DNA of 64,000 nt from Podarcis bocagei (taxonomy: Eukaryota), in assembly GCA_964188305.1 (NCBI GenBank), contig OZ076886.1; one strand, given 5' to 3'. How positions within the stretch are numbered: the first letter of the stretch is position 1; every line of letters begins with the position of its first letter. Made by a program: the position numbers and the translations under genes. The notes beneath the pieces were generated by a model. The model was not told the DNA's origin and did not search any database. It saw nothing but the letters and a program-made list of their open reading frames with translations. Positions 34,829-34,861 of this stretch are shown one piece after another.

Positions 34829-34832
<4 letters not shown>

Positions 34833-34861
34833 CTTCCCCCTGGGTCAGGCCCCGGCGCCAT
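34829..34861 (-). promoter_or_regulatory. uORF in the BAP1 5'UTR ([10 protein letters not shown]), stop overlapping the main start codon (ATGA)
   Basis: Minus strand gtcATGGCGCCGGGGCCTGACCCAGGGGGAAGATGA; G at -3 and G at +4. Confidence 0.75.

Follow-up and report, generated by a model that had tools for sequence, protein, structure and literature searches.

A start codon upstream of BAP1 kept across tetrapods and its probable role in limiting BAP1 translation

Background

Several described systems resemble the short upstream open reading frame (uORF) that precedes BAP1, and each of them differs from it in some respect:

i) The uORF of ERBB2 (HER2/neu). Child, Miller and Geballe reportedly found in 1999 that this 6-codon uORF lowers the translation of the main ORF, the main AUG being reached by leaky scanning together with limited reinitiation. 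Both this uORF and that of BAP1 are very short and end a few nucleotides from the main AUG. However, the ERBB2 uORF stops 5 nt before the main AUG, whereas in BAP1 the stop either shares bases with the AUG (ATGA) or comes 5 nt later, and the BAP1 uORF is known from sequence.

ii) The uORF2 of ATF4 and the uORF of CHOP/DDIT3. Like the BAP1 uORF, they end at or past the main start, and the ribosomes translating them are lost to the main ORF. Nevertheless, ATF4 and CHOP/DDIT3 need a preceding permissive uORF and eIF2-alpha phosphorylation (delayed reinitiation), whereas BAP1 has a single conserved uORF.

iii) Termination-reinitiation in viruses. In calicivirus VP1/VP2 and influenza B M1/BM2 (UAAUG) the stop and the start share nucleotides, as the AUGA does in those species where the upstream ATG (uATG) of BAP1 lies at -29. 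The viral systems have long upstream ORFs and a TURBS motif complementary to the 18S rRNA, whereas the upstream ORF of BAP1 has 10 codons.

iv) The downstream promoter motif of YY1 (AAGATGGCGGC), which acts as DNA. It shares with the BAP1 uATG the ATGGCG core, the sense orientation and the location in a CpG-island promoter. Against this, the BAP1 flanks mostly misfit the motif, the human variants at c.-26G are neutral and the distance to the TSS is probably too large.

BAP1, a tumour suppressor in uveal melanoma, mesothelioma and renal cancer, is sensitive to dosage and is also a gene of developmental disorders. The interpretation of its variants currently ends at the coding sequence and the splice sites. 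Control by a uORF is of a known kind and seems to be undescribed for BAP1; actually, in the literature on a BAP1 uORF or uAUG and on BAP1 translation, 5'UTR and promoter we found no description of this uORF.

Results and discussion

The uORF and the BAP1 start in Podarcis bocagei

The DNA analysed, here called the window, is a stretch of 64,000 nucleotides from Podarcis bocagei (GCA_964188305.1, contig OZ076886.1) which has no N anywhere. BAP1 lies on its minus strand, and the features around its start are the following:

34829..34861, minus: uORF of 10 codons plus stop (direct reading and translation; homologous uORFs in all the tetrapods examined)
34856..34864, minus: uATG in strong Kozak context, GTC ATG GCG (reading and alignments; the ATGGCG hexamer is invariant in tetrapods)
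34829..34831, minus: uORF stop TGA, its T and G common to the BAP1 ATG (ATGA) (direct reading)
34830..34832, minus: BAP1 start codon in the context aagATGa, with A at -3 (reading; the N-terminus is that of the BAP1 orthologues found)
34796..34832, minus: coding part of BAP1 exon 1, followed by a GTGAGT donor (direct reading)
about 32510-32481, 32281-32230 and 31464-31333, minus: BAP1 exons 2, 3 and 4
19894..34832 (the first figure approximate), minus: BAP1 coding region of the 17-exon type, closest to Podarcis BAP1 (tblastn of orthologues)

The coding region was delimited by tblastn of orthologues against the window, with positions 34791-34840 masked. These matches place the window in Lacertidae: the encoded BAP1 is nearest to that of Podarcis and differs from each of the four recorded lacertid proteins. 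The 13 N-terminal residues encoded by exon 1 are identical to those of the orthologues found, and the region of the uORF and the BAP1 start is a CpG island.

Read from 34861 down to 34829, the uORF is ATG GCG CCG GGG CCT GAC CCA GGG GGA AGA TGA. The distance from the uATG to the BAP1 ATG is 29 nt, and the context GTCATGG offers a G at -3 and a G at +4. The first-pass annotation of this DNA had described a 10-codon uORF with its uATG at -29, a strong Kozak context and a TGA overlapping the BAP1 ATG, and the letters of the window agree with it exactly. It had also called the context of the main ATG weaker. The sequence aagATGA is as it was given; nevertheless, this context should be regarded as adequate and not as weak, because it has an A at -3. 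Within 400 nt, the only other ATGs on the minus strand are at 35021 and 35208.

Chance expectation in a single genome

We shuffled the leader, with the first three BAP1 codons entered in the test. An ATG was present in 59% of the shuffles, 36% contained a uORF in another frame than BAP1 with its end on or beyond the main ATG, and 14% contained such a uORF in a strong Kozak context. Thus, the layout found in one genome is not beyond chance, and its significance has to come from conservation. The overlap between stop and start is automatic, because the conserved codons ATG AAT AAG hold a TGA in one frame and a TAA in the other, so that any open out-of-frame uORF terminates there. There is a lesson for annotation here: the stop overlap is a by-product of ATG AAT AAG, and the conserved feature is the upstream start.

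Conservation across tetrapods

The orthologue search began with exon 4 alone, and a full-length match was then used for further searches. The comparison included 11 tetrapods: two lacertids, an anole, a skink-like lizard, a gecko, a turtle, a crocodile, a bird, echidna, a newt and human, the human entry coming only from a published variant table. The alignments used the window only from 34841 upward and the orthologue leaders only up to -1. According to the position and frame of the uATG, the species were arranged as follows:

uATG at -29, frame 2, stop TGA of ATGA, 10 codons: the window, Zootoca, the skink-like lizard, Anolis sagrei and echidna (human also at -29)
uATG at -28, frame 1, stop TAA at CDS +6..+8, 11 codons: the gecko Eublepharis, the softshell turtle Pelodiscus (mRNA), the mousebird Colius and Crocodylus
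uATG at -25, frame 1, TAA at CDS +6..+8, 10 codons: salamandrid newt mRNAs, with the peptide MARSPQQEDE

The uATG was kept at the aligned position in 11 of the 11 tetrapods, always in the invariant context G-N-N-ATGGCG. In every one of them no further ATG stands between it and the main one, its frame is never that of BAP1, and the uORF stop is a TGA or a TAA within the first BAP1 codons; in the species with the uATG at -28 or -25 the uORF extends 5 nt further, to the TAA. In gar there was no ATG at the homologous place, the nearest upstream ATGs being at -60 and -51, in frame with a stop at -30. Conservation across amniotes had been suggested beforehand as a possibility, with an alignment of the BAP1 5' leaders as the check. 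The aligned leaders show that the uATG is not absent in the other amniotes examined, and its presence even in newt takes the conservation well beyond them. A chance or lineage-specific origin of the uATG is ruled out by this conservation across tetrapods.

Indels of 1 nt and 4 nt on the 3' side of the uATG changed the frame at least twice among the tetrapods, and they left the uATG intact and never put it in frame with BAP1. Since the indels alter the frame and spare the uATG, the selected feature would be the start and not the peptide. Regarding the peptides, Zootoca and three mRNA contigs of the skink-like lizard have MALRPDPGGR, Anolis sagrei has MALRPGPGGR and echidna MAQRPGPGGR. A conserved uORF peptide can be ruled out, given the changes of frame between lineages and the variation in codons 3-6. 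The alignments show retention of the uATG beyond neutral expectation, and the start of the uORF, unlike the peptide and the exact stop, dates from before the amphibian/amniote split and has persisted since then.

The first-pass annotation had given the human uORF the same offset, length and overlap as that of the window. Over the species compared, these are not constant: a uATG at -29 with TGA does hold in mammals and most squamates, whereas the gecko, turtle, crocodile and bird have it at -28 and the newt at -25. A conserved position with a diverged peptide had been named as what would indicate a translational control element. The aligned position is kept; however, the peptide remains half conserved (M-A-x-R-P-x-P in amniotes), and the following block of the leader is conserved in its entirety:

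34833..34874, minus: conserved proximal leader block, -42..-1 (alignments of leaders)

Upstream of about -42 the leaders of different orders do not align. Since the whole block is conserved, the ATG is not the sole constrained feature. It could therefore be argued that the block was conserved for some other reason, such as the Kozak surroundings of the main AUG, a G-rich or structured RNA or the core promoter, and that the uATG is a passenger which is tolerated and has little effect. We consider this decidedly unlikely. Conservation over all of -42..-1 would fit it, and so would the 36% of shuffles with a uORF ending on the start. Nevertheless, the ATG is fully invariant while the adjacent codons vary, and the indels that move the frame neither delete the ATG nor bring it in frame. 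With respect to structure, RNAalifold gave a weak hairpin of 7 pairs with no compensatory change, so a conserved RNA structure of the leader is ruled out, and this too speaks against a tolerated uATG.

The longest invariant run of the aligned leader is ATGGCG. This is more than an ATG plus a G: the CG after ATGG is not required by a uORF and counts against reading the conserved feature as one. The main rival to a uORF is a YY1-like motif, that is, a DNA element with ATGGCG as the core of a YY1-type site (AAGATGGCGGC) or of a site for another factor, located just downstream of the TSS in a CpG-island promoter, with the ORF as a by-product. In housekeeping promoters, sense-oriented YY1 sites are frequent on the 3' side of the TSS, often with an ATG, and both bird and crocodile read ACATGGCGGCG, a near match to the YY1 consensus. 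However, the flanks outside the hexamer fit the consensus only in these two and misfit it in squamates, mammals and newt. Moreover, the hexamer lies about 70-100 nt into the mRNA in the species with transcript contigs, beyond the usual +10..+30. On balance, we regard a DNA element as fairly unlikely, also in view of the human data given below.

We also noted two start annotations in the databases. In Crocodylus porosus (GCA_001723895.1) the BAP1 start on record (MFRWRERAPL...) belongs to a wrongly modelled first exon at locus position 1501. The canonical exon 1, with the uATG at -28, is at locus position 14600, 13 kb downstream and across two assembly gaps, and was located by looking for the first BAP1 codons with a degenerate pattern of 15 letters. 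The other is a BAP1 model of 811 aa that starts 36 residues before MNKGW at an in-frame ATG, which is either a misannotation or a lineage with a true in-frame upstream start.

Presence in mRNAs and promoter context

The uATG is contained in Logan transcript contigs of relatives of the window species, whose leaders measure 99-118 nt in the lizard, 39 nt in the turtle and 87-131 nt in the newt. These lengths place the uATG within the mRNA of the skink-like lizard, Pelodiscus and the newt. In human, c.-29 is cDNA position 102 of ENST00000460680.6 (PMC11250367), from which it follows that the annotated leader has 130 nt and includes the uATG.

These leaders bear on the suggestion that in Podarcis the TSS lies downstream of 34861, or so near it that the uATG is skipped and the uORF is unused in this lizard. 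CpG-island promoters do have dispersed TSSs, and the conservation across orders starts only at about -42. Nevertheless, the contigs of three other tetrapods begin between 39 and 131 nt before the main ATG and include the uATG, the human leader is annotated at 130 nt, and motifs typical of promoters, of the CRE-like kind, are found at about -185 in the window. Such a start site is therefore very improbable.

There is another reading frame upstream of the uORF:

34845..35021, minus: 58 codons in the BAP1 reading frame, from an upstream ATG (-189) to a TGA (-15..-13), the ATG lying in a CRE-like ATGACGTG (direct reading)

The same layout, with an in-frame ATG far upstream, was found in Zootoca. 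This frame is probably promoter sequence outside the mRNA. The motif is a CRE/ATF-like TGACGT(G/C) at 35014-35024 on the minus strand of the window; it is often spelt ATGACG and thereby includes an ATG, which in lacertids shares the BAP1 frame and meets the TGA at -15..-13. Motifs of the TGACGT type occur about 70-190 nt upstream in lizards (the anole included), gecko, bird, crocodile and echidna, and the recurrent TGACGT(G/C) is probably a conserved promoter element.

Saturation editing of the human leader

BAP1, including 70 nt of its leader, has been saturated with variants in HAP1 cells (Waters et al. 2024; PMC11250367). From the reference bases that the published variant table gives in HGVS notation, a human uORF can be read from c.-29 to c.4, with 10 codons and the peptide MALRGRPAGR*. 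The layout of the human uORF that the first-pass annotation had given (uATG, length and overlap) matches these bases. Neither the text nor the supplements of that study mention a uORF, Kozak context or upstream starts (PMC11250367).

Ten of the 210 SNVs in c.-70..-1 were scored as depleted (PMC11250367). Six of these are among the nine SNVs of the uATG (c.-29..-27), in comparison with 4 of the 201 others (Fisher p = 1.5e-7). The six are c.-29A>C, c.-28T>C, c.-28T>G and c.-27G>A/C/T, with scores from -0.018 to -0.023, and for at least two of them the two SGE libraries disagreed; the other three, c.-29A>G, c.-29A>T and c.-28T>A, were unchanged (PMC11250367). The mean fitness effect of the uATG SNVs was about 9% of that of start loss. 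Variants that weaken the Kozak context of the uATG (c.-32G>C/T and c.-26G>N) had an effect of the same sign and about half the size, which was non-significant. The pattern of substitutions did not follow near-cognate strength, as ATG>CTG was depleted and ATG>AAG unchanged. These data show that the human ATG triplet at c.-29..-27 matters for cell fitness, although slightly.

The depletion centred on the three bases of the ATG argues against the uATG being a tolerated passenger of the conserved block. It has to be said that most of the extra uATGs engineered in the human leader were neutral, as was the loss of the uORF stop, and both would be expected of a passenger. With regard to a YY1-type element, a lower fitness after loss of the ATG is what a drop in transcription would cause. 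However, the three SNVs at c.-26G and all those at c.-24G were unchanged and only one of the three at c.-25 scored. As the second G of ATGG, c.-26G is essential in the CCAT core of YY1 and yet it was neutral, and c.-28T>A was neutral too.

Regarding the main start, c.-3A>C (-0.053) and c.-3A>T (-0.095) were depleted and c.-3A>G was not (PMC11250367), which suggests that the main AUG is read by scanning ribosomes sensitive to context. The three substitutions that destroy the uORF stop, c.4A>C/G/T, were unchanged (PMC11250367). Reinitiation after the uORF is therefore not needed for BAP1 function. Leaky scanning or reinitiation had both been proposed at the outset as the way to the main start, and the neutrality of c.4A>C/G/T argues against reinitiation as the main route. 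On the same ground, BAP1 does not need a coupling of termination and reinitiation like that of the viruses. Moreover, the overlap exists in the -29 species only, the stop being at +6..+8 in gecko, turtle, crocodile, bird and newt.

Some other variants of the leader stood out in the same data (PMC11250367). Depletion was found for c.-43G>T, which makes an ATG at -44 in the uORF frame, and for c.-25C>T, which changes uORF codon 2 from GCG to GTG; c.-22T>G, which removes a CTG in the uORF frame, was enriched. The SNVs creating ATGs at -62, -50, -40, -35, -23, -20 and -3 were neutral. No single model accounts for c.-43, c.-25, c.-22 and the neutral ATG-creating SNVs together.

Proposed mechanism

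Our preferred reading is that this is a genuine BAP1 uORF, maintained by evolution, that throttles BAP1, with BAP1 made by leaky scanning. We give it a probability of about 0.55, its translation, its lowering of BAP1 output and the supply of the main AUG by leaky scanning being the parts that we infer. On their way to the BAP1 AUG, and 25-29 nt short of it, scanning 43S complexes would meet an AUG whose context is strong (G at -3, G at +4). A context of this strength implies that many scanning ribosomes initiate there. A substantial share of the complexes would do so, translate the 10-11 codons and terminate on a stop that falls within BAP1 codons 1-3, either the UGA of AUGA or the UAA of AUGAAUAA. 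Since termination would occur on or past the BAP1 AUG, the ribosomes that use the uORF would be largely lost for BAP1, with little room for reinitiation. BAP1 would then come mainly from ribosomes that pass the uAUG without initiating and select the BAP1 AUG by its A at -3, and the strong dependence of fitness on this A points to leaky scanning as the way in which BAP1 is made. In this manner, the uORF would be a constitutive throttle setting the dosage of BAP1, and it probably limits the amount of BAP1 protein. The uORF peptide is probably irrelevant because its frame changes between lineages, and indels that shift the frame without ever removing the uATG or bringing it in frame are what a translational gate predicts.

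Nevertheless, the sign of the fitness effect is awkward for this throttle, because the loss of a repressive uORF in an essential gene should be neutral or beneficial and yet it was slightly deleterious. The model must therefore invoke a mild harm from excess BAP1 in HAP1 cells, which is plausible for a dosage-sensitive chromatin enzyme. The depleted CTG, the neutral AAG and the neutrality of most engineered uATGs also fit the throttle imperfectly.

Significance for BAP1 variants

A uORF kept for ~350 million years points to three to six nucleotides of the leader as candidate functional positions, in human c.-32 and c.-29 to c.-26. It also gives a concrete reading of a signal in published saturation-editing data that is small, sharply localised and undiscussed. 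We could go further and propose that the uORF sets the dosage with clinical weight, holding translation well below its potential, so that the loss of c.-29 to c.-27 would overproduce BAP1 and be harmful; this stronger version is unlikely. If it were true, changes of the uATG, and perhaps some gains of an upstream ATG, would be an unrecognised functional class of BAP1 alleles. Furthermore, as the use of a uORF depends on the stringency of start-codon selection, the output of BAP1 could in that case be coupled to eIF1, eIF5 and eIF1A (EIF1AX), EIF1AX being the other uveal-melanoma gene.

Neighbourhood and repeats in the window

On one side of BAP1, the C-terminal (3') exons of a dynein heavy chain of the DNAH1 type (390-17000, plus strand) converge on the BAP1 3' end. 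On the other side there are PSI and Ig exons of a semaphorin of the SEMA3G type (56298-62026, minus strand). The BAP1 promoter and the semaphorin exons are roughly 20 kb apart, and in this interval we saw no gene resembling PHF7, which in human is arranged head-to-head with BAP1.

Intron 1 of BAP1 contains a GC-rich island (GC 0.60-0.64, CpG o/e about 0.78) in which a direct repeat of 71 nt occurs at 33637-33707 and 33755-33825, 118 nt apart and with 92% identity. This island may act as a promoter or enhancer within the intron, or may be a repeat element. Many SINE-like copies are present in the window, for example at 29811-29948, 35867-36187, 38910-39233 and 47887-48060, with the translation ...RVVLWVKPQSLGLADQKVGSSNPHDGVSS..., and the tail of a CR1-type LINE (...LRELGMFSLEKRRLRGDMI...) is found at 48855-49616. 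This content of SINE-like and CR1-type elements is typical of a squamate genome.
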